DNA of 28,299 nt, taken from contig NZ_JMCB01000035.1 of the NCBI RefSeq assembly GCF_000737315.1, positions 1 to 28,299 of the forward strand. The letters are read 5' to 3'. A program made the position numbers and the translations under genes. Positions 1 to 28,299 of this stretch are shown piece by piece. Positions within the stretch are counted from its first letter, which is position 1. Each line of letters opens with the position of its first letter. This DNA comes from Hyalangium minutum. GTDB taxonomy: Bacteria > Myxococcota > Myxococcia > Myxococcales > Myxococcaceae. Under the pieces are notes generated by a model. It saw nothing but the letters and a program-made list of their open reading frames with translations. It did not search any database and was not told the DNA's origin.

Positions 1-88
1 CACCGCCACGGCCTCCAGCCTCCCTCGCTACTCCCGAGCTTCGAGACCGCTCCGGCTGCTCTGGCTGCTTGAGCCGGTGAACTCTTAC
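1..88 (+). mobile_element. tnpC: IS66-family element, right end (last 23 codons of TnpC, stop at 70-72, then terminal IR ending ...CTCTTAC)
   Basis: Frame 1 reads HRHGLQPPSLLPSFETAPAALAA*, matching the ...PPSLLP C-terminus of one IS66 TnpC subgroup. The terminus reads GTAAG on the minus strand, the IS66 GTAA signature. It is an exact inverted copy of 28204-28291. Confidence 0.8.
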
Positions 89-329
89 GTTGAACTTTAT
101 GGCCCGCATTTAATTCAACATGACCGCGACCTTGATTTAGAACAATCGAATCCTGAACATTTCCGATGGCATGTTGACTTGGATCAGCTGTATCTAAGTC
201 ACGATGCGGCCCATCTTGAGCTCGATTCGCCGCATCGTGATCGTTTTCCAGCGGATGTTGCCCGTGTTGCGTTGTTCCAATTTCGTTTGGGTAGCCGGTT
301 GCTTTTCTAAGCTGTAACTCTCGACTCGA

Positions 330-836
330 TTAACCACCCGGAGAGTAAAGTGTCGTCACACGTTCATATGCGCCGACGCAACCGGCAGTGTCGACGCGAG
401 CTGGATTGCCGTTGAAATACAGGGAAATTGCCAGCGATTTCATCTCCTCAGGGGCGTTGGACGGGATCATCACCCACCCATTGTTGTTTCCACATGGCCC
501 TGGATTCGGCAATCCGGCCCATCGGATGTACACCTCTCCGCCGGACCCGACTGCGACGGCCGTGATTGCTGACGCATTGTAGATTGCTGACGCATTGTAG
601 TCGCTCCTCCACAGCTCGTTCCCGCTCGTCCCGTCGTCGGCGCGGAATATCAGCTGGCCGCCGACGTCGGTAAGGAAGGAGGGCTCGGAGCCCTCGGGGC
701 CGGGCCGCACGTCCATGACCATGACGGCAGGACCAGATACAACCGGAGGGGGCTCCGGCGTCTGGGCCAGTGCGGCGCTTCCGGACAACAGAAACAGCGA
801 GGACAGCAGGCGAGACGGTGAGCAAAGACGATTCAT
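330..836 (-). CDS. Chimeric secreted protein: signal peptide and first ELWxxD repeat of an ELWxxDGT-repeat protein fused in frame to an unrelated ~80-aa Cys-containing domain
   Basis: ATG at 836 with GGGAG upstream; signal peptide; ...LIFRADDGTSGNELWRSD then an abrupt switch to YNASAIYNASAITAVAV.... The 3' part has visibly lower GC. Confidence 0.7.
   Translation of the reverse strand: MNRLCSPSRLLSSLFLLSGSAALAQTPEPPPVVSGPAVMVMDVRPGPEGSEPSFLTDVGGQLIFRADDGTSGNELWRSDYNASAIYNASAITAVAVGSGGEVYIRWAGLPNPGPCGNNNGWVMIPSNAPEEMKSLAISLYFNGNPARVDTAGCVGAYERVTTLYSPGG
564..600. repeat. Perfect 18-bp tandem duplication GATTGCTGACGCATTGTA x2 at the fusion junction
   Basis: Seen directly at 564-581 and 582-599; encodes YNASAI twice. 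Confidence 0.95.
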
Positions 837-1453
837 GAGGACTCCCAACCGCGTGGGAAAGAAGCCCACGCGAGGGAAGGTGGGAGGCGGTCAGGCCCGA
901 AGTCCATCGCCTCACGGTCCCCCAGGGGGATTTCACACTGAACACTCGCTGGTGCCGGCCGTCCACGAGCGCCCCGCATGCTGCCACCCGGCCTCAATGA
1001 CACGCCCGAGAAGCGGCGCCTGTTGCGCCGTCGTTACGGTGCGTCAGCCATGTCTTCGAGCTGCCCCTCGGCGAGGGCGCGGTAGTGGGGCACGACTTCC
1101 ACCTTGAGCACGTCCCGCATCTCCTGGCGGGCGCTGCCGAAGTGAGTCTGCCCCAGTTCCGTGGCTCTCCCGCACTTCGTGTGGTTCCCCTCGAAGGCGA
1201 AAGGGAGACACGGCGAGCTGCCGACCACACTCATCCATCAGGGAAGTCTGGTCTTGGGTCTGTCGTCATCTACGCCCCAGTGACTCTCCCCTCGGAAAGC
1301 GAGCGGAAGAACGGCCATGCGCGCAGCTTCCTCCTCGGCCCCCCTCCACATAAAGTGCGGGAGAGCCGGTATACCTCGCTCCTCGAAATGGGAAAACCGG
1401 ACCCGACCTCCAGGCGTCAGTCGAGACGACGGGATGCGCCGGCGGGCGAGCGC

Positions 1454-2380
1454 TCAGCCGATGACGAACTTGTCGCGGTGCTGATTAATGAATTGATCAA
1501 GCGACGTCAGCGGCACACCCCAGCTACGAACGGCATTGAGGTCCACCTTATAGCCCTCGACATTGTCCCATACCTGGCCCCTGACGTGCAGCGGATGGTA
1601 GCCTTGCGCGAGCATCTCATCTTCCGAGAAGGTGACGGCCGAAACCGGCTTTCCGGTGCCCTTCGCGATCTTGGCTGCAACCTCGACCAAAGTGGCGCAT
1701 TCCGCAGAGAGGTCAATCTCATGACCGTGGAAACGCTCAGGGTCGGCGAAGGCGGCCGCCGCGAATGCGCCGATGTCCTGCGCGGCGATCCAGTCGAGGC
1801 CGGTGTCCGCTTCGATCGCAGTCTCGAACCGACCGTGTTCGCGGAGCGAAGCGAACATGAAATCCACCATCGGCGGCACCAAGTCCTCCATGATGAGGGC
1901 AGGCTTCAGGATCACCCAGTGGCGGAAGCCCTGCGTCTTGACCATGTCGTTCACGGCCGCCTTGTTCTGCCAGTACAGCGGCTCCCAGCGGCCCTCGTCC
2001 CAGCCGACGAAATTCTCGTGATCGCCTGCCCGGGCGACGGAGGTGTGAACGATCACGTTGACGTCCGCGCGTTTAGCGGCCTCGACCAATGCCTTGCCGG
2101 TTACGATCTCGGTATAGGGGTCACTGGGCTGCGATCCCATCTGCACTGAGAAGACGCCTTCCACTCCTGCCAATGCCGCATCGAGGCTGGCGGAATCGGT
2201 AAAGTCGCCCTTCACGACCTCCACTCCCTGCGCCGCGAGCGCCTGTCCCGCAGCCGAAGCGGGATCGCGCGTCAGGGCGCGTACGGGGCGGCCCGCTTGC
2301 AGCAGCGCGCGGACGACGGCACCACCTTGCTTGCCGGTGGCACCGGCCACGAGGATTGGGCGAATATCGGGGTTCGACAT
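1454..2380 (-). CDS. NmrA-family NAD(P)-binding (atypical SDR) protein
   Basis: N-terminal ILVAGATGKQGGAVVRALL Rossmann motif, GDFTD, WVILKPALIME; 308 aa, full length. Confidence 0.93.
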   Translation of the reverse strand: MSNPDIRPILVAGATGKQGGAVVRALLQAGRPVRALTRDPASAAGQALAAQGVEVVKGDFTDSASLDAALAGVEGVFSVQMGSQPSDPYTEIVTGKALVEAAKRADVNVIVHTSVARAGDHENFVGWDEGRWEPLYWQNKAAVNDMVKTQGFRHWVILKPALIMEDLVPPMVDFMFASLREHGRFETAIEADTGLDWIAAQDIGAFAAAAFADPERFHGHEIDLSAECATLVEVAAKIAKGTGKPVSAVTFSEDEMLAQGYHPLHVRGQVWDNVEGYKVDLNAVRSWGVPLTSLDQFINQHRDKFVIG

Positions 2381-2502
2381 GGGAAGCCTTTCCTAAGGGA
2401 TATCGCGCACGGCGCCGGGGAAGTGCTGACCCAAGGATAGGGCTACCCGATACGAAACGCAAGAGTTCCGGTACGGTTGATTTTCGTAATTAAGAATCTA
2501 TT

Positions 2503-3138
2503 ATGATTGCCATGAACGATCTGTCTCACCGTCATCAGCGTCGCCTTCCGCCGGCGGAACGGGGGCGCGCGCAGGACAGAAGCCGCGACGATCTCATCAT
2601 CGGCGCAGCGCTCGAGCTGCTCGCCGAAAAGGGCTATCATAGCCTGACGATGACTGATGTGGCGGCGCGTGCGGGGGTGTCGAAGGCGACGCTGTATCGA
2701 CGTTGGACGGCAAAGGCAGATCTTGTGACCGACGCCGTCGCTACGCTGAATCCGATGACCACGCCGCGCTATCCCGGCACGTCACTGCGCGACGATCTCC
2801 TCGCGTTGATGGAGCAAGCCGGCAATTGCGACGACAGTCCCGAGGTTGTGACCGCGACGATGGAGATGGCGCGGTTGCACCCGGACCTTTATCGGACTCT
2901 CACCGAGCGCTTCGGCACGTTCGTTCGGGCCGAGCTGGACAAGCTCGCCACCCGAGCGGCCGATGCGGGACACGCGCCACTGTCGGAGGTCGAACTCGAC
3001 GTTCTGTGCGATACGGTCGTCGCGCTGCTGGCTCATTACGCTGGACCGGCTGGTGCATCAATTCCGCGCGAGCGTCTGATTGGACTGGTCGACCATGTGC
3101 TGATGGTCCTGCTGACGGGAACACGTGCCGCGGAGTAG
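2503..3138 (+). CDS. TetR/AcrR-family transcriptional regulator, divergent from the NmrA gene
   Basis: AALELLAEKGYHSLTMTDVAARAGVSKATLYRRW HTH signature. The start could be 2503 or 2512. Confidence 0.93.
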   Translation: MIAMNDLSHRHQRRLPPAERGRAQDRSRDDLIIGAALELLAEKGYHSLTMTDVAARAGVSKATLYRRWTAKADLVTDAVATLNPMTTPRYPGTSLRDDLLALMEQAGNCDDSPEVVTATMEMARLHPDLYRTLTERFGTFVRAELDKLATRAADAGHAPLSEVELDVLCDTVVALLAHYAGPAGASIPRERLIGLVDHVLMVLLTGTRAAE

Positions 3139-3297
3139 GCGATCTTGCTCCTGCGCGGCCGCTTCGCGACTTGGCCGCTTGAAGCTGCTGGCCTCCAGCG
3201 CACGAAACCCGGTTATTCCCAAAACAGCATCCTCCCCGCCCAGCGCGCCATACTGGAACGGCTCCGGACCATCAGGAAGGTTCTGCACTGAGCCAGA

Positions 3298-3323
3298 GGA
3301 GCTCGAATCACTCTTCGAGCTCC
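3298..3323. terminator. 10-bp perfect stem hairpin GGAGCTCGAA-6-TTCGAGCTCC, probably bidirectional
   Basis: Lies 10 bp past the stop at 3333 (minus) and just past a plus-strand remnant stop near 3291. Confidence 0.55.
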
Positions 3324-3332
3324 CGTTCGCAC

Positions 3333-3572
3333 TCACTGCCCCGGTTGGCTTTCGAAAGAGGTGAGCTCCGCCGGCAGGGCGGGCAGGTGCTCGAAGTAGA
3401 TGAGCGTCTTGTCCCCGCCCTGGCCCTCGATGGCGATGCACTCCACCTCGCCCGCGCCGTTCAACCGGACGTAGGTGCGGCTCGGGTGTTCGATCCCCTT
3501 CTTTTCGAACGCCAGGTCGCGCATGGGGAGCAGGTCGCCCATTTCCTGGTCTCCCAACTCGCCGTTGAGCAT
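3333..3572 (-). pseudogene. DUF5335-like small protein remnant (N-terminus missing, probable internal deletion)
   Basis: GELGDQEMGDLLPMRDLAFEKKG joined directly to IEHPSRTYVRLNGAGEVECIAIEGQGGDKTLIYFEHLPALPAE resembles DUF5335, but the segment between the two halves appears to be missing. Confidence 0.5.
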
Positions 3573-4027
3573 AGGAAGGACCGGAGCCCTCTTGGGCGTA
3601 GCGGGCGGGAGCAGAGCGGGAGGTGAGGGACGCTGACGGGGAGCCCATGAGCCGCACTCCGGGCCGGCGCACAAGCCCTTCATTGGAAACGATCTTCCAA
3701 TAACGAGGGATTTCGATCCCGTCGATCGCGACGAAGCGCGGGCACGAGTCCCGCGCTCCAACGATCGCCGTCACTTCCGCCGATGGTCATGACGAGTGCG
3801 GCTTGCCGCCCGCAGCAGGGAATGAGGTACTCTCTTGTTCAAGAGCCCAGCGGCAGAGCGGAAGTTGGTGCCACGTACACCCATCGGGCGTCCGGAGGTC
3901 GAGCAAGGGACCAGGAAGAGCCATCGACAGCGATGCTGATCCGACCCGCGCTTGCCTGATCACCCCTATGCACCAAGGATCGCGCACCCCGCGATCGAAA
4001 CGCCGCGCTTCCGGAAGATCGTCTCCA

Positions 4028-4458
4028 CTCTTCTTCAACTACGCCCATGAGCCGCTCGTCGTCATCAACCCGGCCAACGCCGACCGGCTGCAGCACCTGG
4101 TGCGCAACCAGCTCGGCTTCGACCTGATCGGCTCCACCGGCCTGGGGGAGCGCTTCGAGCTGGGCCTCGTGGCCCCGCTCAAGATCGAGCGCGGCGAGTT
4201 CAACGAGCTGCCCACCGGCAACCTGGAGCAGTCGTGGAAGGGCGGCCTGGGTGACCTCCGGCTCGTCCCCAAGGTGTTACTTCTAGAACGCGACACCCTG
4301 CGGCTGGGGCTCGCGGCGCCAATGGTGATGCCCACGGCGGACGCCTCGGAGCTTCAGGGCCAGAAGGGGTTTGGCGTGCAGCCGCGGCTCGCGGCGGACT
4401 ACGCCTTCGAGAGCGGCACCCGGCTGCTGGCCAACCTGGGCCTCAACGTGCGCAGCCG
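4028..4458 (+). pseudogene. Internal fragment of a myxobacterial outer-membrane beta-barrel (OmpA/TraB/AgmC-type barrel)
   Basis: FNYAHEPLVV...GLGERFELGLVAPL...GGLGDLRLVPKVLLL...PRLAADY...LLANLG. No credible start or signal peptide; cut at 4459 by the oriIS-like repeat. Confidence 0.75.
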
Positions 4459-4520
4459 GCGTATAGGCAGGATAGAGGCCATGTTGCTGGTGAGGGCTGG
4501 AGCGGAGGTGCCGAGGAGGA
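4459..4520 (-). mobile_element. Isolated 62-bp copy of an IS91/ISCR-type oriIS end (copy B)
   Basis: 60/62 identical to 7132-7193. On the minus strand it ends ...TATCCTGCCTATACGC, carrying the CCTATAC core of ISCR oriIS. Confidence 0.8.
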
Positions 4521-4529
4521 GCGACACGA

Positions 4530-7025
4530 TCAGCCCTCCTTGCGCACCACCCGGTCCCGCCGCCACTTCACCTTCTTTCCGATGAGCTTCGCCCCGGTCA
4601 CGTCGTTCGTCGTGGTGCTGGCCTTGTAGCACTTGTCGATGGACAGCGTGACGAAGCTGGTGTCCACATCGATCACTTCGCCGACCACATCGACGCCGGG
4701 GTGGAAGAGCGCGTTGGCCATGCGGATCCGGTCCCCCTTCTTGAACTGGACCGCGCGCGGCCAGTCGATCGTCGTTCCCACCAGCTTCTTCGTCTGCGTT
4801 GTGGTTTCGAGGATCATCGTGCCGGTCTGATAGCACGCCTTCGCCTTCAGCTTGATGTGCGTCTCGGTCAGCTCGGTGACCTCGCCGACGATCTCGAAGC
4901 CCTGGTAGGTCGACGGATCCGAGACGCGAATTGTATCTCCCACTTTGGACTCGGGAGCGGTCTTGGAGACCTTCTTGTCCGCGCGGAACGCTTGCTTGAG
5001 CTGCTCCAGCGACTTCTCCTTGTGACTGGACTGCTGGAAGAACTTCTGGGTGTCGCCGATCTTCCCAAAGAGCTTGAGCTTCGCGGTGATGCCCGTGTTG
5101 GGGAAGCGGCTCGCATACCGTGGGTAGGCGAACACGATGAACCAGACCAAGGCGCGCATCTTCTGCTCCTCCTCGTCGACGAGTCCGCCGAGATGAAGGA
5201 GTGACCGTGCCAACTCGGAGAGCTTCGACGTGAGGTACTTCTTCTGCAGCAGCGCCTGCTTGAAACTGTTGTACTCGCTCAGGGTCTCGCTCCCGGCGAT
5301 CCGCTCGATGGTGCGGCTGACGGTGGTGTTCTGGAGCGCGGAGTACCGGAGGAAGCCGGTGTCCCGGTTCTCGATCTGGAAGAACAGCGGGAACCCCTTG
5401 GTGGTTCCGCGGCCCCCGCCATCCAGCGACGCATTGAGCCGGATCAGGTAGGCCATGAGCTCTTGCAGCGAGCGGCCCTGGAACCCACAGAGCTGCTTGA
5501 TCCGCGTCGCCCCTACCGGGTTCTGGAGGTCGTCTTCCGACTGCGTGCGGTCGAAGTAGATCGTCGGCACGCCGAGGTACATCAGGCGCTCCATCGAGCC
5601 GCTGCGCATGCCGATCTGGATCACCGGATAGCGGAGGGAGAGGTTGAGCAGGAAGTTGATCTGAGCCCCCATCGGCTGGCCCTTGAAGGGCTCGCGCTCC
5701 CAGAACCGGATCAAGTTATGGGACGATGGGCTCTTGCGGTACGAGAGCGTCAACATCTCGTCGCTCTTCTTCTCAGAGATTCCGTAGTGGTGCAGGAGGT
5801 AGCTCTGGATCCGCGTCCGATCCTCCGACGAGAGGTTCTCGTAGAGCGAGATGCCGAGGACCATCGCCGTGTGCTCGAGCGCGTTCTGGCCCATGGAGAG
5901 GTCCTCGCCCCTCGCCATCGCTCTCGAGGAGATCGGGGCCGACAGCTTCCCGAGCTCTTCCTTGAGCTCGTCGCCGATGGGGATGAACCGGATCGGCGCG
6001 TTCAGCTCGGCCGCCATGTCGGAGACGATCTGCCTGACCTGCTTGTAGAGCGTGAAGTTGGTATGGTGCTGCGGCTTGCCGGGGCTCGTTCTCTCCTGCC
6101 CGAGGCCGAAGTCCGCGAGGATGGCGCGCTCCTCGTCGGGCTTCGCGCCGCGGATCCAGAACAGCACCAGGACGGGCGTGGCCTCTCGGACTCCGCCCTT
6201 GCGCAACTCCAGATCCTCGACGAAGGTCGAGATGAACTTTTCGTTCGCCTGGGAAAACTTGCTGGTGGCGTTGAGGATCTCCAGCCGGAGCGCGCTCACC
6301 ACTGGCGCGAAGCCTTTCTTGTCCACGCAGCTCAGGACGTAGTTCGTCGAGGCATCGATGTAAGCGAAGGCGATCTGCCCCTTGCCACCGTGGAACGCCT
6401 TCATGACGGCATCCGAGAACTCCTGACGGCGGCGGGCGACGAGCCCCACCTCCATGACGTCAAGAGCCGCCTCCTTGTAGAAGGAGTGTACGCGGAGGAA
6501 GCCACGCAACCGCTCGGCGTTCGACCACGACACCCTGCCCGACAGTGAGATGCCGAGAACCGCCGCCGCATGCTCGAGCGAGCGCTCATCCACTTTGAGG
6601 GCCAGCGCCGCTTCCTTCTCCTCGAGCCAGCCGCCGATGGGGTTCTCCTTCGTGGTGAGGAAGCGCGACAGGAGGCGGGGGTTGCTGTTGAAGAAGTCCT
6701 TGTCCGCGATCACCAGGAGGGAGCCTGGCTCCTCATGGAACTCCACGAGATCGACGTCCTTCTCGAAGCGGCAGCGGACGATGCAGAGTTCGCTGTCGAG
6801 CAGGCCGAATGACGAGAAGTAGCCCAGCCGCCCATCGACCTTCCGCTTGTAGTCGACGGCCTTCTTGAGCAAGGGGTCGATTCCGTCGTCGTACAGCCCC
6901 TCGTCCACCCACAGGAGCCCCCTCATCGGATCGCCCAGCTTGGCCCGGCTCAGCAGCAGCGCGTACACGAGCCCGTAGGCGTCTCCCTCTTGGTAGATGT
7001 GGTGGTTGACGAAAGTGGTCCCCAT
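4530..7025 (-). CDS. Large hypothetical protein (831 aa): putative GT-B/GT9-like glycosyltransferase with two C-terminal SH3/KOW-like barrels
   Basis: Long open frame with coding-like codon bias; ATG at 7025 with AAGGA upstream (the ORF track extends to 7073). EGDAYGLVYALLL and QIGMRSGSMERLMYLGVPTIYF resemble the GT9 motifs lGD..l..pal and IGnDSGpmHlAaalgvPtv.lF. The gene itself is confident; the function is tentative. Confidence 0.6.
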   Translation of the reverse strand: MGTTFVNHHIYQEGDAYGLVYALLLSRAKLGDPMRGLLWVDEGLYDDGIDPLLKKAVDYKRKVDGRLGYFSSFGLLDSELCIVRCRFEKDVDLVEFHEEPGSLLVIADKDFFNSNPRLLSRFLTTKENPIGGWLEEKEAALALKVDERSLEHAAAVLGISLSGRVSWSNAERLRGFLRVHSFYKEAALDVMEVGLVARRRQEFSDAVMKAFHGGKGQIAFAYIDASTNYVLSCVDKKGFAPVVSALRLEILNATSKFSQANEKFISTFVEDLELRKGGVREATPVLVLFWIRGAKPDEERAILADFGLGQERTSPGKPQHHTNFTLYKQVRQIVSDMAAELNAPIRFIPIGDELKEELGKLSAPISSRAMARGEDLSMGQNALEHTAMVLGISLYENLSSEDRTRIQSYLLHHYGISEKKSDEMLTLSYRKSPSSHNLIRFWEREPFKGQPMGAQINFLLNLSLRYPVIQIGMRSGSMERLMYLGVPTIYFDRTQSEDDLQNPVGATRIKQLCGFQGRSLQELMAYLIRLNASLDGGGRGTTKGFPLFFQIENRDTGFLRYSALQNTTVSRTIERIAGSETLSEYNSFKQALLQKKYLTSKLSELARSLLHLGGLVDEEEQKMRALVWFIVFAYPRYASRFPNTGITAKLKLFGKIGDTQKFFQQSSHKEKSLEQLKQAFRADKKVSKTAPESKVGDTIRVSDPSTYQGFEIVGEVTELTETHIKLKAKACYQTGTMILETTTQTKKLVGTTIDWPRAVQFKKGDRIRMANALFHPGVDVVGEVIDVDTSFVTLSIDKCYKASTTTNDVTGAKLIGKKVKWRRDRVVRKEG

Positions 7026-7131
7026 GGCCGACCGTCCTTTGCCTTGTAGCGGCCGGAGAGTGTCGGTGATCATGTCGCACAGAGCGAGAAATCGTGCCCC
7101 GGCCCATGGGCAGCGCTACGGAATCAGCCGC

Positions 7132-7638
7132 GCGTATAGGCAGGATAGAGGCCATGTTGCGGGTGAGGACTGGAGCGGAGGTGCCGAGGAGGACCGCTGA
7201 CAGGTGCCGCCCGAGCAGTGCGCCCGGTCGGTGGACAGGCCGCGCAGCCCCTTGAGGTACACGCCTGCCCAGGCCGCCCTCCCATGGGGTGCGCGGTAGG
7301 GGACTGGGCCTTTTGGCTCTGGGGAGGCGTGAGCCTTAACACCCCGCGGCCTGGATTGATTCTTGCGCCGGGGCCAGGCTCACACCTGCCGTGGGCAAGC
7401 CCAGGTGCTCCCGTATCGCTCGCACTCCCCTGCCTGCCTTCACATACGCCAAGACCCTTAAGCCTGCCTCCACACCTGACGCAGGCGAACACGTCGAAGT
7501 CGAACGTCCTCTTCAGCAACTCTGCCCAATCCACTCGCGGCGTCCTCTGCTTCATCCGCTCCTTCCTGGCCGCTGCCTCACTCCCCGCTCTCGCCTCCTC
7601 CGCTTGGGGGAACAGAAATGGCCGCAGTTTGGCGCGAA
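7132..7638 (-). mobile_element. 5'-truncated IS91/ISCR-like (Y2 HUH) element: frameshifted transposase C-terminus, GC-rich downstream region and oriIS end (copy A)
   Basis: AKLRPFLFPQ...RTPRVDWAELLKRTFDFDVFACVRCGGR is the DWA..LKR.F..D...C..CGG C-terminal motif of IS91/ISCR transposases. The frame shifts after CGGR. The end reads CCTATACGC at 7132. Confidence 0.85.
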
Positions 7639-7867
7639 CGGAGATCACCGATCCCTCCTATACCAGCGGCGGCAGCTGCCCAGCGGGGCGCAGCTGCCGC
7701 TACAGCGACAGCGCCTTCTTCAGTGCCAGCACCAGCGTCAGCCCGCTGGTGGCGATGACTCGTGCGGCGCGGGCTCCAACCCGTGGAACTTCGCCTTCGC
7801 CCCGTTGGGCTCCATCCAGAACGAGTTGGGGATTGTCCCCTACTGCCAGGGTTTCGTGGGCTGCTGA
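7639..7867 (+). pseudogene. 3' remnant of a Cys-containing, probably secreted protein, frameshifted
   Basis: Two frames join as ...TDPSYTSGGSCPAGRSCRYSDSAFFSAST... / ...DDSCGAGSNPWNFAFAPLGSIQNELGIVPYCQGFVGC*. The 5' part is replaced by the IS91-like remnant. Confidence 0.35.
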
Positions 7868-7890
7868 GCGGAAGCCACAGGCCGATCGGT

Positions 7891-10017: not shown

Positions 10018-12677
10018 GCTGCCCAGACGAGAACGACCTCGCCCGCTACGTGAATGGCTTGCTGTCGGCCGAGCGTGAGCAGGCGGTGCGCTCCCATGTC
10101 ACCGGCTGTGGCGAGTGCCGGAGCGTGCTCGCCGCGCTGAGCGCTCTGGAGGAGCCGCCCCTCGCGCAGGGCGTGGGGCCGCTCGCCACGGGCACGCGGG
10201 TAGGGCGCTATGTGGTGCTGGGCCTGTTGGGCGAGGGCGGCATGGGCCGCGTCCATGTCGCGTACGACCCCGAGCTGGACCGCAAGGTGGCGTTGAAGCT
10301 GCTCAACCCGGAGCGGCTTCGCGGGGACTCGCTGGACCTGGCGCGACAGCGGCTGGAGCGCGAGGCCCGGACCATGGCGCGGCTGTCCCATCCCCATGTC
10401 GCCAGCCTCCATGACGTGGGCGAGTACGAGGGACAGCTGTTCCTGGTGATGGAGTTCGTGGAGGGAGGCACGCTGCGGAAGTGGCTGGCGGAACGTCCCC
10501 GCTCGCGCCGGGAGATCCTGGAGCGCTTCCTCCAGGCCGCGGACGGGCTCGCTGCCTCGCATGCGCTGGGCATCGTCCACCGCGACTTCAAGCCGGACAA
10601 CGTCCTGCTCACGAAGCCTGGCGTCGTCCGCATCACCGACTTCGGCCTGGCCCACGCGACGGCGGCGTCCGGGGAGGGGGCGGTGCTGGATGCCTCGGTG
10701 ACGAGCGACGCCCTCACCGTCACCGGGACCTTGCTGGGCACGCTGGCCTACGGCGCGCCCGAGCAGCTTCGTGGCGAGCGCGGCGATGCCCGCTCGGACC
10801 AGTTCTCCTTCTGCGTCGCGCTCTACGAGGCGCTCAATGGCCAGCGTCCCTTCGAGGGGACAACCCGGGAGGCGCTGCTGGAGGCGATGGCGCGTCAGGC
10901 CGTGCGGCCCGAACGGCCCGGGGTTCCGGTGTGGCTGCGGTCCGTGGTCCGCCGGGGGCTCTCCGCGGACCCGGCGAAGCGCTTCTCCTCCATGGGCGAG
11001 CTGCGCGCACGGCTCGCCCGGGACCCTGTCTCCCGATGGCGCAACGGGAGCCTGGCGGCGCTGGCGGTGGTCCTGGCCGTCGCGGTGCTGGGCGTACTTG
11101 CCCGGAGGGAGCCGCGCGAGCTGTGTCAGGGCAGCGAGCGGCACTTCGCGGGAGTCTGGGACGAGGCGGCCCGCGAGGCCCTCCACCGGGCGTTCCTGGC
11201 CACGGGCTCGCCAGACGCGGAAGCCTCCTTCGCGGCGGTGGCGGCGGCGCTGGAGCGCTGGAAGGAGGACTGGACGCGCGCGCACCAGGAGGCCTGCGAG
11301 GCCACGCGTGTCTGGGGGGAGCAGTCGGACCAGGTGCTGGGCCTGCGCATGGCGTGTCTCGATGAACGGCTGGGCGAGGTGAATCGCCTGGTGGCAGTGC
11401 TCCAGGGCGCGGACGCCCGCACGGTGGAGCGTGGCTTCGGCCTGGGGGCGTCCCTGACAAGCCTGCGGCGCTGCTCCGACGTGAGGACGTTGCAGGAGGC
11501 GGTGGCGCTACCCGAGGACCCGGTGGCCTTGGCGGAGGTGGCGGTCATCCGGGGGGAACTGGCGCGGGCGAACGCGGAGTTGCTCGCGGGGCGTACCCCG
11601 GAGGCCTTGAAGGGGGTGCTGGCCGCGCGGGAGCGCGCTGTGCGCACGCACTACCGCCCCTTGGAGGCGGAGGCCCACCTGCTGTGCTCGACGATTCAGT
11701 CGGATGCGAGCATGTTCGAAGCCGCCCGGGACTCCGCGGCACAGGCGGCCCTCGCGGCGGAAGCCGGGCGGCACCATGGCGTGCTGGCGCGGGCGCTCTA
11801 TGGCATGGCCTGGGTAACTGTGCATGGCCTGGGGCAGACGCGGGAGGCGTGGGCCCACCTCCAACGCGCCCAGGCCGTAGCGGAGCCGCTGCGAGACCCC
11901 GAGTTCGACGCGCTGCTGGACTATGTCCGCGCCGAGCTGCTCGAACAGGAGGGCCGCTTCGCCGAGGCGGAGCCCCTCCTGCGCGAGGCGCTCGACCGTG
12001 TCATCGCGAAGGGCGCGTCGCACGCCGCCACCCGCGCCGAGCTCACCGGGCGCCTGGGCCTGCTGGCCCGTCAGCAAGGACGGCTCCTCGAGGCGAAGCG
12101 ATGGCAGGAGGAGGCGGTTCGACTCCATGAAGAACTCCATGGCCCCGAGCATCGCGACACCGCGCGGGCGCTGGCGAACCTGGGGGGCACGCTGGGCTAC
12201 ACGGGAGAGTTTGCGCGCGCGGAGGCCGTCATCCAGCGGGCGCTCGTCATCCTCCAGCGCGTCCTGGGAGAGGAGCATCTGGCGGTGGTACGCACCCTGT
12301 CCAACCTGTCCTTCGTCTACTTCGAGTGGGGACATGGCCCCCAGGCGCGTGAGGCCGCGGAACGGGGCTTCGCGCTGGCGCACAAGAGCGTGGCCCCGGA
12401 TGCCGCAGCCTCTATGGTGACGCGGGCCTCGACCTGCGACGACTACAGCGACAGGCCGCTGAAAGATCCCTACACGGAGGTCTATTCCTTCGCCGTCCGC
12501 GGGGACGAACTCTTCACTCAGAGAGAGGAGGACGACCCGAAGGTCACCCTGCGCTGGAAGCGGGTGAGCGACCTGTGCGAGGCGTCCACCTCGTTCAAGT
12601 GCCGGGGACGAGGGTCGTGCTCCTGTGTCACCACGAAGAACAAGCCCCTGACGGGCCAGCAGAACTGCACCCTCTGA
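10014..12677 (+). CDS. Membrane Ser/Thr protein kinase (N-terminal zinc-finger-like motif, Pkinase, TM, TPR repeats) with a foreign C-terminal ~85 aa
   Basis: HVTGCGEC motif; LGEGGMGRV, VALK, HRDFKPDNVL, DFG, APE; TM near aa 345-365; TPRs. After about 12420 the sequence changes to an unrelated Cys-rich tail. Confidence 0.9.
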   Translation: MSCPDENDLARYVNGLLSAEREQAVRSHVTGCGECRSVLAALSALEEPPLAQGVGPLATGTRVGRYVVLGLLGEGGMGRVHVAYDPELDRKVALKLLNPERLRGDSLDLARQRLEREARTMARLSHPHVASLHDVGEYEGQLFLVMEFVEGGTLRKWLAERPRSRREILERFLQAADGLAASHALGIVHRDFKPDNVLLTKPGVVRITDFGLAHATAASGEGAVLDASVTSDALTVTGTLLGTLAYGAPEQLRGERGDARSDQFSFCVALYEALNGQRPFEGTTREALLEAMARQAVRPERPGVPVWLRSVVRRGLSADPAKRFSSMGELRARLARDPVSRWRNGSLAALAVVLAVAVLGVLARREPRELCQGSERHFAGVWDEAAREALHRAFLATGSPDAEASFAAVAAALERWKEDWTRAHQEACEATRVWGEQSDQVLGLRMACLDERLGEVNRLVAVLQGADARTVERGFGLGASLTSLRRCSDVRTLQEAVALPEDPVALAEVAVIRGELARANAELLAGRTPEALKGVLAARERAVRTHYRPLEAEAHLLCSTIQSDASMFEAARDSAAQAALAAEAGRHHGVLARALYGMAWVTVHGLGQTREAWAHLQRAQAVAEPLRDPEFDALLDYVRAELLEQEGRFAEAEPLLREALDRVIAKGASHAATRAELTGRLGLLARQQGRLLEAKRWQEEAVRLHEELHGPEHRDTARALANLGGTLGYTGEFARAEAVIQRALVILQRVLGEEHLAVVRTLSNLSFVYFEWGHGPQAREAAERGFALAHKSVAPDAAASMVTRASTCDDYSDRPLKDPYTEVYSFAVRGDELFTQREEDDPKVTLRWKRVSDLCEASTSFKCRGRGSCSCVTTKNKPLTGQQNCTL

Positions 12678-23758: not shown

Positions 23759-26041
23759 TTAGGGAGCATAGAGCTCCGCAGAGCTGAAGATGACGCCTCC
23801 CGAGAGGAGCACCTTGCCGGTGGGCAGCAGAGTCAGGCTGTGCGAATAGCGACTCGTTTGCATGGAACTCGTGAGCTCCCAGGTTCCCACTGCAGGATCG
23901 TACAGCTCCGCCGAGGCATGGGCCCCGTTGATGGAGCGGCCTCCGGCGACGAGCACCTTGCCCGAGAGCAGCAGCGTCACGGCGGTCTGGTAGCGGGGGA
24001 CACTCATGGAGCCGGTGGTGACCCAAGTGCCGCTATCCGGGTCGTACACCTCTGTCGCTGCCGAGGTGGTCGATCCGCCAAGGACGAGCACCTTGCCGGA
24101 GGGCAGCAGCGTGGCAATGTGGTCCTCGCGAGACTGAGTCATGGAGCCGGTGGGCGTCCAGGTACCCGTGTTCGGGTCGTACAACTCCGCCGAGGAATGG
24201 AAGGGCTCTCCGCCAGTCACGAGCACCTTGCCGGAGAACAGAAGCGTCGCGGTATGGTCACTGCGGGCATCGTGCATGGAGTTCGTGGCGGTCCAGGTTC
24301 CCGTAGCCGGGTCATACACCTCCGCGGTTGCTGCGTAGTCGGTCGAGTACCCTCCCACCACCAGCACTTTTCCAGAGGGCAGCAGCGTCGCGGTGTGGCC
24401 ACCACGCGCATGGTTCATGGTGCCGGTCGACGTCCAGGTTCCCGTGGCAGGGTCATACAGCTCCGCCGTTGCCTGATAGGTGTCCGAGTACCCTCCGGTG
24501 ACAAGGACCTTTCCAGATTGCAGGAGCGTCGCTGTGTGACTCACGCGGGGGATGCTCATCGCGCCCGTGGCCATCCATGTGCCAGTTTCCGGATCGTACA
24601 TCTCCGCTGTCTCCAGGAGTGAGCCGGTCCAAAGCCCTCCGCCAGTCACGAGCACCTTGCCAGAGGACAAGGTCGTCGCGGTGTGCCAGTACCGAGCCTG
24701 GGAAGGGGAAGAGGTGGCAGTCCAGGTGCCGGACAGGGCGCAGGAAGCCAGTCCGGTAATGGTAAAGGTGCGGGTGGCGGTCAAACCAACGCCGTTGGTG
24801 ACGGTAGCAGTGACAGGGGCGGTGCCGCCGTCTGGCACGCAGGTGGGCGCTGTCCACGTGACACGGCTTCTGGTGGCCGAGTCCTCAGACTGGCCCAGCG
24901 CGCCCACAGGGGAACTCCAGGCGAAAGAGAGCAGGCTGTTCGTCAGGTCGCTGGCTACCACCTCGAAGACGAGGAGCTGAGAGGGCGTCGCCGTGAGTGC
25001 GGACTGATAGGAGCGCACGATGATGGGAGGCAAGGAGAGGGGGGACGCCGGAGACACGCACAAGGCCAGGGTGGCGGTCGCATGGCCGCCGCGCTCGTCG
25101 GAGACCTCCACCTGCACTTGGCAGTTGTTGCAGGAGTGAGCGGGCAGTGCAGTGGGAGAGAAGCGGGCCGTGGACATATTTGGGTTCTCCCACGTGCCCA
25201 GGCAGGAGGCGCTCCACTGGTAGCGGAGTGCATCTCCGTCACCATCCGAGGCGGAGACGGAGAGTTCCGTCTGCTCGCCTACAGCCAAAGAGGACTGAGA
25301 TGAGGAGAGGTTCGTCACAACGGGGCGGTTGTTGAAGCGCACGTCCAGAATCACGTCGCCTTGCCCGGCAGAGACGTTCACCGTGAAGGACACCGAGGTG
25401 GCAGCTCCGTGCGAGTCGATCACAGTGAGCGCGAGCTGCACTGGACCCAAGGTGGCCGGAGCGTTCCAGGTGGTGCTGGCCTGGGTGGGCGCGGAGAAGA
25501 TGCCTGACGGTGCTGTCCACTCGTACTCCAGGGAGTCGCTCTGGTTGGGATCATGCGCGCTTGCCATCAATGACACACTCTCGCCGGGGGCTACGACCAG
25601 AGGCGAGGCCACCATTGAGTCAATCAGCGGAGCCTCGTTCGTGTAGGGCTCTTCGGCGGCGCTCTCGTGAAGAGTGAGGGTGATGAGTGACATCTCCGAT
25701 GCCCCGATGGTGACACCTGTGGAATGTCCCTCATAGAGCAGAGTGTCTGCTGGCCCGAAGGCCTGGGCCAGGAATGCGCGGCCGGTACCAGCCGGGATGT
25801 TGCCGACGACTCCTCCCCACACCCCATTCGTTTTCACCAGCTCGGTGACGATGGAGGGCATGTCCGCTGCGGAGGAAGTGACGGTCACGCGTGAGATGTC
25901 ATTGGCGGAGAGGGTGTGGCGCGTGGACACGGCCAACTGCACCGAGCCAGTAGCGCGCGCGGACGCAGAGGAACTCTCATGACAGCCGGCGAGCAGTGCC
26001 CACAACAGGAATAGGACATAGAGGGGACGTGATAGAGGCAT
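23759..26041 (-). CDS. Kelch-repeat lipoprotein with N-terminal Ig/PKD-like domains
   Basis: Lipobox LLAGC; repeated NxxP...Y.W beta-sandwich units; seven R..HTATLL.SGKVLV.GG kelch blades. Confidence 0.92.
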   Translation of the reverse strand: MPLSRPLYVLFLLWALLAGCHESSSASARATGSVQLAVSTRHTLSANDISRVTVTSSAADMPSIVTELVKTNGVWGGVVGNIPAGTGRAFLAQAFGPADTLLYEGHSTGVTIGASEMSLITLTLHESAAEEPYTNEAPLIDSMVASPLVVAPGESVSLMASAHDPNQSDSLEYEWTAPSGIFSAPTQASTTWNAPATLGPVQLALTVIDSHGAATSVSFTVNVSAGQGDVILDVRFNNRPVVTNLSSSQSSLAVGEQTELSVSASDGDGDALRYQWSASCLGTWENPNMSTARFSPTALPAHSCNNCQVQVEVSDERGGHATATLALCVSPASPLSLPPIIVRSYQSALTATPSQLLVFEVVASDLTNSLLSFAWSSPVGALGQSEDSATRSRVTWTAPTCVPDGGTAPVTATVTNGVGLTATRTFTITGLASCALSGTWTATSSPSQARYWHTATTLSSGKVLVTGGGLWTGSLLETAEMYDPETGTWMATGAMSIPRVSHTATLLQSGKVLVTGGYSDTYQATAELYDPATGTWTSTGTMNHARGGHTATLLPSGKVLVVGGYSTDYAATAEVYDPATGTWTATNSMHDARSDHTATLLFSGKVLVTGGEPFHSSAELYDPNTGTWTPTGSMTQSREDHIATLLPSGKVLVLGGSTTSAATEVYDPDSGTWVTTGSMSVPRYQTAVTLLLSGKVLVAGGRSINGAHASAELYDPAVGTWELTSSMQTSRYSHSLTLLPTGKVLLSGGVIFSSAELYAP

Positions 26042-26322
26042 AGCGCTTGTTCCTTGAAAGAGAGGGGCACCATGCCCGCTCTCTTTCAGGACAATGCCCA
26101 GTGTGCGATGTCGAAGCGGTGAGCCCGCTCACAGGATGGTGGTGTGGCTGCTCACACTTTTATTCACTCTGGATGTGAGAGTCTTCACTGCGCCGAGGCG
26201 GTTCACGTGAGAGCTTGGCGGGGCTCGCCGTGCTCACCCAGGACGCTGGGGACTTGTTCCTCCGAACTGGGGGGGCGAGCTTTTCGGTGAGAAGAGAAAC
26301 AACAGACATTCAGGAGATATTC

Positions 26323-28203
26323 ATGCCTTCTGCTTTGAAGACAGGGTTGGGAGTGATTGCGAAGCTCGTGATGACTTCAGCGTTGCTGTGTCTAGCGTGC
26401 CGGGAGGAACTCCAGGGATGGAACGAAGATCCGCCCCATGAAGGGCGCACCGCTCAAGCTCTTCAGGCGACGGCCGGTGGGACTTGGGTGGCCACGAAGC
26501 TCATGGTTAATGCTCGCGACTTCCACTCGGGGACGCTGTTGTCTGACGGCAAGGTGCTGGTCATCGGAGGGGTGGGCCCCAGTGGGGAACTCACCCGTGC
26601 GGAGGTGTACGACCCGGACATGGGAGCGTGGAGCCTCACGAACCCGATGATCATGAACCGCGTTTGTCATACGGCGACACTGCTGCCCTTGAGCAAGGTG
26701 CTGGTCGCCGGAGGTGTGGGCCTCAGCGGCGAACTCCCCCGGGCGGAGGTCTATGATCCGGATACGGGAGCGTGGAGCCTCACAGGCCCTCTGAGCACGG
26801 CCCGCTGTGGGCACACGGCGATCCTGCTATCCTCGGGCAAGGTGCTGATTGCCGGAGGCTGGAACTCGAGCGGCGCGCTCGCCAGCGCGGAGTTGTACGA
26901 TCCGGACACGGGAGAGTGGAGCCCCACGGGCTCAATGGCCACGGCCCGCCAATACCTGACGGCAACGTTGTTGCCTTCAAGCAGGGTGCTGGTCGCCGGA
27001 GGTTCCGGCCTCAGCGGCGCGCTCGCCAGCGCGGAGGTGTACGACCCGGGCACGGGACAGTGGAACCCCACGGGCCCGATGGCGACGGCCCGTGCTCGCC
27101 ACACGGCGACATCGTTGCTGGGCGGTAAGGTACTGGTCGCCGGAGGTTCTGGTCCCAGCGGTGAGCTCGCTAACACGGAGGTGTACGACCCGGACAGGGA
27201 AGAGTGGAGCCCCTCGGGCCCGATGGCCACGGCCCGCGCCCGCCACACGGCGACGCCATTGCCCGGCGGCAAGGTGCTGGTCACTGGAGGCCTTGGCCCT
27301 ACCAGCGAGCTCGACGTGGGCGGACTCGCCAGCGCGGAGGTGTACGATCCAGCCACGGGGGAGTGGAGTCTCACAGGCCCTATGGACACGGGCCGTATGC
27401 ATCACACGGCGACGCTGTTGCGCTCAGGCGAGGTGCTGGCCGTAGGGGGCTACAACTGGCCAGATGGCCGCCTCGCCAGCGCGGAAGTGTATAATCCGGC
27501 CGCGCTGGTGGTGACCTCCCCAGCCAACCACTCGACGACTAAGAATCACCGGCCGATCTACTGCGGGACGGCGAAGGCGGAAAGCACCGTCACCCTGTTC
27601 GTGGATGGGCGTGAGGTAGGTACCACGAAGGCCAACACCTCAGGAGAGTGGTGCCACCAGCAGCCTGTGAACCTGGCGGAGGGCATCCACACTGTGAGGG
27701 CCTGGGTCATGGATGTCGGTGGCAGCACCGGAGCGGACTCGAATACCAACATCTTCACGGTAGACATCACGCCTCCGGCCGTTCCGGAGCTGCTCACCCC
27801 TGCCGACGACTCGACGACCAAGGAGAACCGGCCGATCTATGGCGGGACCGCGGAGGCAGGATGTACCGTCACCGTGTTCGTGGATGGGAGTGAGGTAGGC
27901 ACCACGAAGGCCAACGCCTCGAGGGAGTGGAGCCACCAGCAGCCTGTGAACCTGGCGGACGGCAGCCACACTGTGAGGGCACGGGCCACGGATACAGGGG
28001 ACAATACCGGTCTTGACTCGAAGACCCACTCCTTCTTGGTGGATGCCACATCTCCGGAAAAACCCCTGGTGCGTGTGCCTGACGTCTTCAACACCCAGAA
28101 CCCCAGCCTTGCCGGGGTGGCGGAGGCCCGCAGTCTGGTGACGGTATGGCTGGATGGCACGGAGGTGGGAACACTCACGGCGGATGAGGTGGGAAATTGG
28201 AGC
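26323..28203 (+). pseudogene. Kelch plus bacterial Ig-like repeat lipoprotein interrupted by IS66 (missing from the ORF track because the frame stays open to the window end)
   Basis: AGGAG RBS, ATG 26323, MPSALKTGLGVIAKLVMTSALLCLAC lipobox, seven kelch blades, two full Ig repeats (279-bp period from about 27530) and half of a third cut at 28203. Confidence 0.85.
27530..28087 (+). repeat. Two near-identical 279-bp (93-aa) Ig-like domain repeats
   Basis: ACTCGACGAC... recurs at 27530 and 27809; long shared stretches such as CCACCAGCAGCCTGTGAACCTGGCGGA. Confidence 0.85.
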
Positions 28204-28299
28204 GTAAGAGTTCACCGGCTCAAGCAGCCAGAGCAGCCGGAGCGGTCTCGAAGCTCGGGAGTAGCGAGGGAGGCTGGAGGCCGTGGCGGTGCGCCGCCA
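28204..28299 (-). mobile_element. tnpC: IS66-family element, right end (tnpC 3' end, stop at 28220-28222)
   Basis: Starts GTAAGAGTTCACCGG; identical in reverse complement to 1-88; interrupts the kelch-Ig gene. Confidence 0.8.

Follow-up and report, generated by a model that had tools for sequence, protein, structure and literature searches.

Why does a large gene in the myxobacterium Hyalangium minutum lie between two direct copies of a sequence resembling one end of a rolling-circle transposon? The gene, P0001 (831 amino acids (aa); 4530–7025, minus strand), hereafter the cargo gene, is carried on contig JMCB01000035.1 of assembly GCA_000737315.1. Exact look-up of its protein showed that the 28,299 nucleotides (nt) analyzed here, hereafter the window, are this whole contig. 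Our favored answer, to which we assign a probability of about 0.5, is that a Y2/HUH rolling-circle transposon of the IS91/ISCR family left this region behind as a fossil "sandwich", with the gene captured by transposition that started in trans at the outer of the two ends.

A repeat search of the window returned two copies in direct orientation, at 4459–4523 and 7132–7196, which are identical at 62/65 positions (65 nt at 95%). This recapitulated the 62-bp same-orientation repeat of the initial annotation (60/62 identical over 4459–4520 and 7132–7193), provided that its copy labels are read in minus-strand order: its copy A is 7132–7193, 3′ of a transposase remnant, and its copy B is 4459–4520, 9 nt from the cargo stop codon at 4530–4532 (6 nt when 4523 is used as the repeat end). 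The window contains the terminal 22-mer exactly twice, compared with 0 occurrences in 100 dinucleotide shuffles. With one indel, blastn lengthens the match by 6–7 nt beyond the element terminus defined below (4453–4520 and 7125–7193).

To identify the repeat, we used a 22-mer scan of one genome per species, which gave 15 loci in at least six genera (Pyxidicoccus, Cystobacter, Myxococcus, Archangium, Corallococcus and Vitiosangium, together with several metagenome-assembled genomes). This search for the end in relatives had been suggested by the initial annotation. With the loci oriented alike, similarity is lost at one identical base in 15/15, immediately after ...CCTATACGC (the family terminus is also written ...GGCCTCTATCCTGCCTATACGC). 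Ten of the 15 have in common approximately 225 nt of the upstream end region, and the comparison places the oriIS terminus approximately 200 nt after the transposase stop, a defined terminus downstream of tnpA as expected for the IS91/ISCR family. At two loci (L016 and L019), the same end region lies downstream of open reading frames (ORFs) matching PF04986 Y2_Tnp (E = 6e-24 and 8e-17) and the PF14319 zinc-binding N-terminus; the L016 ORF is 34% identical to ISVsa3/ISCR2 of Escherichia coli plasmids. The ISCR2 copies that we first compared were 3′-truncated by erm(42), and we then used two intact copies on NZ_MT219816.1. Their identity is lost 235 nt past the transposase stop, at ...TTCTTCCTATACG/T (the slash marks the boundary; the end is also given as ...TTCCTATACG/T), and the terminal octamer CCTATACG is therefore common to ISCR2 and the myxobacterial end. 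Judged by these comparisons, namely the single terminal base at 15 loci, the Y2_Tnp ORFs and the octamer, the initial annotation was right to see the oriIS end of an IS91/ISCR element in the repeat; the element family is widespread in Myxococcota. Three other readings of the repeat (as a chance repeat, as attL/attR sites flanking an integrated element and as an outsized target-site duplication) were rejected, given that the terminus is conserved at 15 further loci and that the DNA between the copies encodes no recombinase.

The inner copy (7132–7196, minus strand) forms the terminal 65 nt of a 5′-truncated IS91/ISCR remnant of approximately 520 nt (7132–7650, minus strand), with its terminus, ...CCTATACGC, at 7132. 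The remnant consists of the C-terminal ~100 codons of a Y2 transposase (approximately 7330–7650) and a non-coding end of ~200 nt (7330 to 7132). It matches the full 228-position end profile (nhmmer E = 1e-65), and blastn matches to loci L016, L014, L008 and L018 reach 473 to 504 nt upstream of the terminus. The transposase tail matches NF052416 (ISCR clade Ia; E = 3e-8), and tblastn to the Y2_Tnp ORF of L016, which is from Vitiosangium, covers window 7690–7475, in agreement with the earlier description of one copy as the end of a truncated Y2 transposase. Only this C-terminal tail is kept, and the catalytic domain is therefore absent. The tail is also frameshifted at 7458–7461, where the window has TTAA for the GGC of contig JMCB01000037.1 (contig 37) of the same genome, which is in frame at that site (CGGRRRVLAYVKAG).

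We also noticed that transposase C-terminal ORFs of approximately 72–88 aa are labelled "ATP-dependent helicase HrpA" in many NCBI myxobacterial genomes (P0057, P0065, P0077, P0093, P0103, P0113, P0120–P0124, P0131 and P0132). The label is probably a propagated misannotation.

The outer copy (4459–4523, minus strand; terminus at 4459) is a solo ori end holding the last 65 nt only. It matches profile positions 167–228 by nhmmer, and homology beyond position −65 had no support against shuffles. Outer and inner copies have derived bases in common, yet differ at 3/65 positions. A recent duplication gives this difference a scale. Contig 37 repeats window 1–7614 at 99.92%, with the breakpoint at 7614–7615; the six differences between the duplicates all fall within window 7290–7461 (L004 1786–1957), inside the insertion sequence (IS) remnant, and the remaining 7.29 kb is identical. 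The cargo gene and the two ori copies were therefore passive parts of a larger duplicated block. By comparison, the ori pair, with its 3/65 differences, is either old or derived from two source copies.

Read along the minus strand, the locus comprises the IS remnant (7650 to 7132), 27 nt, the cargo gene with ~85 nt of upstream sequence, 12 nt, the solo 65-nt end (4523 to 4459), a fragment of an outer-membrane beta-barrel gene, and a third, more distant IS91-like end that we call type 2 (3571–3678, minus strand; ...GTCCTTCCTATGCTC; nhmmer E = 1.4e-4). The three ori-type ends thus point in one direction, with unrelated DNA before each. The cargo gene reads in the direction of the transposase remnant, and its ATG, at 7025, lies 106 nt from the inner ori terminus.

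We compared the cargo with its closest relative (loci L001/L002; 86% aa and 90.9% nt identity), which sits after a 451-aa gene and a HEAT-repeat gene. Nucleotide homology spans only window 7104–7110 to 4536, that is, from ~85 nt upstream of the gene through its last sense codon, so that its limits lie within 27 nt of the inner and 12 nt of the outer ori copy. The 27-nt junction (7105–7131, minus strand) begins GCGGCTG and is not significantly similar to the upstream region of this relative (276/1000 shuffles score equally well). The 12-nt junction GGCTGATCGTGT (4524–4535, minus strand) gives the cargo's last codon and its stop; the relative has TAG right after ...RKE. Both repeats are genuine element termini, and the cargo is a discrete block bounded by two ori copies. 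No ori ends were found at L001/L002 and no IS91 end in five further contexts of the cargo family (L020–L024), so the pairing of cargo and oriIS that the initial annotation had proposed to look for at other loci was not seen at any of these; a metagenome scan for cargo relatives gave only two loci, neither with IS91 ends.

The coincidence of the homology limits with both ori copies favors capture over an origin in place. Under the latter, the cargo gene would have been resident throughout. Two like-oriented but independent elements would have inserted, the first upstream of it and the second downstream, in the convergent beta-barrel gene, and deletions would then have reduced them to ~520 and 65 nt. 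Solo ori fragments are indeed dispersed in other genomes and have no link to the cargo: at locus L015, DJ-1/PfpI-like and PhyH genes are flanked by solo ends of 64 and 73 nt separated by 3.06 kb, and L017 and L010 have solo fragments of approximately 40 and 108 nt. The initial annotation had regarded such unlinked dispersal of its unit as evidence against capture, and this much of it is present, in the form of short fragments. The surroundings are also rich in fragments (the beta-barrel gene, a protease-like fragment at 7650–7870, the type-2 end and the IS66 copies), and the GC content at third codon positions (GC3) of the cargo is 0.91, a codon usage typical of the phylum. However, homology limits within 27 and 12 nt of the ori copies would need two further coincident breakpoints, and one of the deletions would need to have stopped no more than a codon from the cargo stop. 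Very short ori-proximal fragments also outnumber long remnants in a way that random deletion does not predict. We consider an in-place origin quite improbable.

If the cargo was captured, the direction of replication limits how. Transposition of IS91 begins at oriIS, which is located downstream of tnpA and depends on a specific tetranucleotide at its flank; the last 82 bp, including that tetranucleotide, suffice, and failed termination at terIS mobilizes DNA beyond terIS (PMC13181058). Replication runs from oriIS to terIS and the cargo lies beyond the remnant's oriIS; read-through from the remnant therefore cannot have captured it, and only a start at the outer ori could. The earlier proposal of rolling-circle capture thus stands as to the ends and the discrete cargo block but not as to terIS read-through, since the cargo lies on the oriIS side.

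In the account that we favor, replication from oriIS would often end early and leave short ori-proximal fragments, one of which would have landed, at a donor locus, just past the cargo stop codon. Acting in trans, a transposase would then have begun at this solo ori, run through the cargo and ended ~110 nt upstream of the ATG, as in one-ended transposition, and the piece of cargo plus ori would have inserted at an ori-adjacent target beside the resident remnant. Passive copying in the ~7.5-kb duplication associated with IS66-family elements came later. By analogy with IS91, whose 82-bp right end is sufficient (PMC13181058), a functional 65-nt ori is plausible. The account draws on the match between the cargo limits and the ori copies, on stacks of mixed end types described below, and on a flanking motif: the terminus is followed by (G)CGGCTG in both window copies and by CGAGCTG in L016 and L019, so that CG(R)GCTG occurs at 4/19 termini, for which a rough binomial estimate gives a chance of ~1e-4. 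The locus is now immobile and retains neither an intact transposase nor a terIS.

Several observations weigh against this account. We found no donor locus, no empty site, no intact form of the beta-barrel gene and no complete element of this lineage with both of its ends. The exact cargo protein occurs in two contigs of one genome only, both within the duplicate of window 1–7614, and there is no independent insertion of cargo plus ori. None of the best 120 of 209 protein matches (61–179 aa) is a full-length transposase of this lineage, which seems to survive mostly as 3′ remnants. The junction exactly at the cargo stop codon is a coincidence under every model. For both strands of the terminal 65 and 129 nt, single-stranded DNA folding gave no ori-end hairpins better than shuffles (z = +0.7 to +1.5), and the small inserts in L008 and L011 lack CG(R)GCTG at their left ends. 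Finally, the one-genome-per-species scan gave no locus from the window's own genome, so its tally of ori copies is for other genomes only.

Seven termini from several genera (L005, L006, L007, L008, L010, L011 and L018) abut a different sequence, CGG(A)TTTGGTCC(A/T)nTTTGGTCC..., at an offset of 2–5 variable nt. It could represent a favored target or, alternatively, a repeat element in its own right.

Other myxobacterial genomes also have stacks in which partial ori ends lie distal to a full end and point the same way. At L008, a full end is followed by 56 nt and a 23-nt end, and at L011 by 117 nt, a 25-nt end and an 11-nt repeat; L009 has an 11-nt terminal duplication. Two stacks mix the end types: L007 has a type-2 end with a 35-nt duplication and then the last 90 nt of a type-1 end, and L005 has the type-2 terminal motif only (TCCTATGCTCCT) followed by the same 90-nt type-1 fragment. 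Solo and partial fragments outside the window measure approximately 11, 23, 25, 40, 64, 70, 73, 90 and 108 nt and have no fixed boundary. Both the myxobacterial family and ISCR2 typically show graded ori-proximal fragments in one-directional stacks, which may or may not enclose foreign DNA.

These stacks also bear on whether the 65-nt copy is a unit in its own right. We rejected its reading as a miniature inverted-repeat transposable element, as the left boundaries of solo fragments vary (−62, −65, −70, −75 and others). Nor do the partial ends, which range over 11–108 nt without a common boundary, single out 62 bp as the minimal ori, which the initial annotation had suggested it may approximate. 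The further idea of that annotation, that the cargo plus 62 bp forms a mobile Helitron-like unit, is likewise not supported: the sole other copy lies inside the duplication of 1–7614, and the other cargo relatives examined have no ori ends, so there is no evidence that cargo plus 62 bp moves alone. Unlike the 65-nt copy, two other classes of fragment have left boundaries in common, namely the remnants of ~490–520 nt (L008, L014 and L018) and a type-2 unit of ~108 nt (the window and L007). The three long remnants begin at /CTCCCCCAAGC, within a few nt of the duplication breakpoint at window 7614 (window 7612–7630); the breakpoint between the window and contig 37 reads TGTTC/CCCCAAGC, with GTTC within it. 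This boundary might mark an internal pseudo-terminator or a hot spot of recombination. The type-2 unit, also present in Myxococcus qinghaiensis (L007, 5246–5358) with the same left boundary ATGAAGGGCTTGTGCG and thus found in two genera, looks like a fixed-length miniature derivative.

Stacks of this kind could alternatively arise by template switching at a nicked oriIS. Here, once the transposase had nicked the boundary of flank and ori, leading-strand synthesis would copy the first 65 nt of ori, jump to the cargo locus for ~2.6 kb, return to that boundary via CAGCCG microhomology and copy the ori again, giving the order flank, partial ori, filler, full ori and IS with no transposition of cargo plus ori. 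The partial copy is in fact always distal and the full copy continuous with the IS (the window, L008, L009 and L011), and 6–7 nt (CAGCCG, plus strand) are common just outside both window termini. Tandem duplications of 11 nt (L009), 35 nt (L007) and, in ISCR2, 98–101 nt (100% identical to the neighboring copy) likewise resemble in-place copying errors. On the other hand, the mixed-type stacks (L005, L007 and the window) cannot come from re-copying one end; repeated insertion fits them better. The window copies differ at 3/65 positions but would have been identical when formed, there is no source copy of the cargo in the same genome, and the hexamer is equally explained as a target or terminator motif, with CGAGCTG present at unrelated sites in L016 and L019. 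We regard template switching as unlikely.

The position of the cargo gene suggests one more alternative, in which it is a regular passenger of a transposon organized as tnpA, internal ori-like site, passenger and true ori, with the window holding a decayed copy. The cargo has the orientation of tnpA and starts 106 nt after the inner terminus, genes downstream of ISCR1 are driven by outward promoters of the oriIS region (PMC6218425), and ISCR2 arrays hold genes between ori ends. However, a cargo homologue lies beside the end in 0/15 other loci, no IS91 end was found at the other cargo loci examined, and homology stops at the inner terminus in all other copies. This alternative is, in our estimation, highly improbable.

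Taken further, the capture account would imply that Myxococcota IS91-family elements propagate mainly as graded ori-proximal fragments that re-insert beside ori ends, that the resulting stacks trap host DNA, and that a solo 65-nt ori moved a whole gene in trans. We put this forward tentatively, as somewhat unlikely. If true, it would be a bacterial counterpart of the end-stacking and gene capture of Helitrons, and the minimal ori of the lineage would be at most 65 nt plus a CG(R)GCTG flank.

For the cargo protein, no domain was matched in Pfam, NCBIfam, PADLOC or a PDB sequence-profile search. The protein has 16 relatives, the named ones myxobacterial (Vitiosangium, Corallococcus and Archangium), and the family is confined here to Myxococcota-type sequences; its invariant motifs include GKPQHHTN and GMRSGxMERLMxxGVPT. 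An AlphaFold2 model (predicted local distance difference test score (pLDDT) 76, predicted template modeling score (pTM) 0.67) gave weak Foldseek matches to glycogen synthase (E = 7e-4), GT9, OtsA and UDP-GlcNAc 2-epimerase, with low TM-scores (0.15–0.37), and its C-terminus gave weak matches to tandem Tudor/KOW-like barrels. The model weakly suggests that the fold may be GT-B-like.

The neighborhood of the locus consists of gene fragments. The beta-barrel fragment (4019–4458, plus strand; Phenol_MetA_deg/TraB-N-terminal-like) is cut at the outer ori terminus and has lost its own N-terminus as well. It matches PF13557 (E = 5e-5, 24 bits) and, weakly, TraB profile positions 49–203 of 522 (41.6 bits, the cut-off being 700). 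The initial annotation had described an OmpA-type gene cut mid-ORF; a broken beta-barrel gene does lie at the outer copy, and the part that is kept has no OmpA domain. Following its suggestion of an intact allele or empty site, a protein search with the fragment returned only itself and one 38%-identical protein. On the other side, a frameshifted, protease-like C-terminal gene fragment (ITDPSYTSGGSCPAGRSCRYSDSAFF... then ...NPWNFAFAPLGSIQNELGIVPYCQGFVGC*; 7650–7870, plus strand) abuts the truncated end of the IS remnant.

Both contig ends carry the terminal inverted repeat of an IS66-family element (GTAAGAGTTCACCGG...; 1–88, minus strand, with a mirror copy at 28204–28299), which explains why the contig breaks there. 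Contig 37 holds the full 1553-bp IS66-family element (L004 1–1553), with a single DDE_Tnp_IS66 transposase ORF, at the boundary of the duplicated block. When contig 37 is closed end to end, this element is flanked on either side by an identical 8-bp sequence, AGTTCAAC, as expected for one insertion, which suggests a tandem or circular unit of ~9.16 kb. Directly inside the IS66-family end, the GC content of 89–600 is low (53–55%, compared with 66% for the window). Elsewhere, a Kelch-repeat/PKD protein (23759–26041, minus strand) explains the 135–147-nt tandem repeats at ~23.8–24.7 kb, and a probable second Kelch-repeat gene (~26300–28200, plus strand), which runs into the IS66-family end at the contig edge, would explain the 144-nt repeats at ~26.5–27.5 kb.

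Taken alone, the locus is a defunct remnant from which no new mechanism emerges. Its interest lies in its setting: ISCR/IS91 capture has so far been studied almost only for resistance genes on proteobacterial plasmids, and the locus suggests that gene capture is a general by-product of rolling-circle transposition chemistry. The natural series of ori-proximal fragments (11–108 nt and ~500 nt) also offers ready deletion variants for mapping the minimal oriIS.

Among known systems, eukaryotic Helitrons are likewise rolling-circle HUH transposons with asymmetric ends, host-DNA capture and stacked ends. They differ in having a Rep-helicase transposase and in capturing mainly by 3′-end bypass, and the likeness is one of analogy, not membership. 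Closer to the present case, one-ended transposition of IS91, IS801 and IS1294 involves functionally distinct ends, a short sequence abutting oriIS and a short right end that is enough (PMC13181058). However, classical capture by these elements takes DNA beyond terIS, upstream of tnpA, whereas the cargo here lies beyond oriIS, so the outer ori had to start. The flank here is CG(R)GCTG rather than CTTG or GTTC, and we detected no subterminal palindrome, whereas IS91/ISCR ends are described as forming secondary structures. The motif following the termini of the window, L016 and L019 recalls IS91, whose short target sequence resembles the one cleaved at terIS. ISCR1 resembles the locus in having unrelated genes directly downstream of oriIS, in transposase orientation (PMC6218425). 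It differs in that its variable region is bounded by a second 3′ conserved segment (3′-CS), not a second oriIS, and in its outward promoters, shown for ISCR1, whereas our promoter scan of 4300–7700 found no sigma-70-like site.

The closest parallels are ISCR28 and ISCR2. As described in PMC12772301, citing Yuan et al. 2024, an ISCR28 "sandwich" captures a gene that lies between a remnant with an extra oriIS and a second oriIS, and capture is credited to the two sequential oriIS; ISCR28 is there intact and integron-associated, whereas the locus here is decayed. For ISCR2, known from tet(X4)/floR/sul2 plasmids, mobility of arrays has been reported (PMC7722449). On the E. coli tet(X4) plasmid pRF173-1_87k_tetX (NZ_MT219816.1), four ISCR2 ori termini point in one direction (3495, 5813, 10421 and 10519) and bracket dfr and estT-tet(X4); the terminus at 5813 belongs to a 1265-nt 5′-truncated ISCR2 remnant, and at 10420–10520 (L028) the last 98–101 nt of the ISCR2 oriIS end stand in tandem after the terminus of an intact copy, with CGT microhomology at the junction. 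The likeness to our locus extends to the 34%-identical Y2/IS91 protein, the CCTATACG terminus, same-direction ori ends around cargo, and a 5′-truncated remnant and a tandem partial end. The two differ in that ISCR2 arrays contain at least one full-length transposase, whereas here a ~520-nt remnant and a 65-nt fragment enclose a non-resistance cargo on a Myxococcota chromosome. As the architecture is already present in ISCR2 and ISCR28, the locus is a further example of a known layout. What is new is this sandwich layout, now inactive, in a new host group, on the chromosomes of soil Myxococcota, and with a cargo other than a resistance gene.

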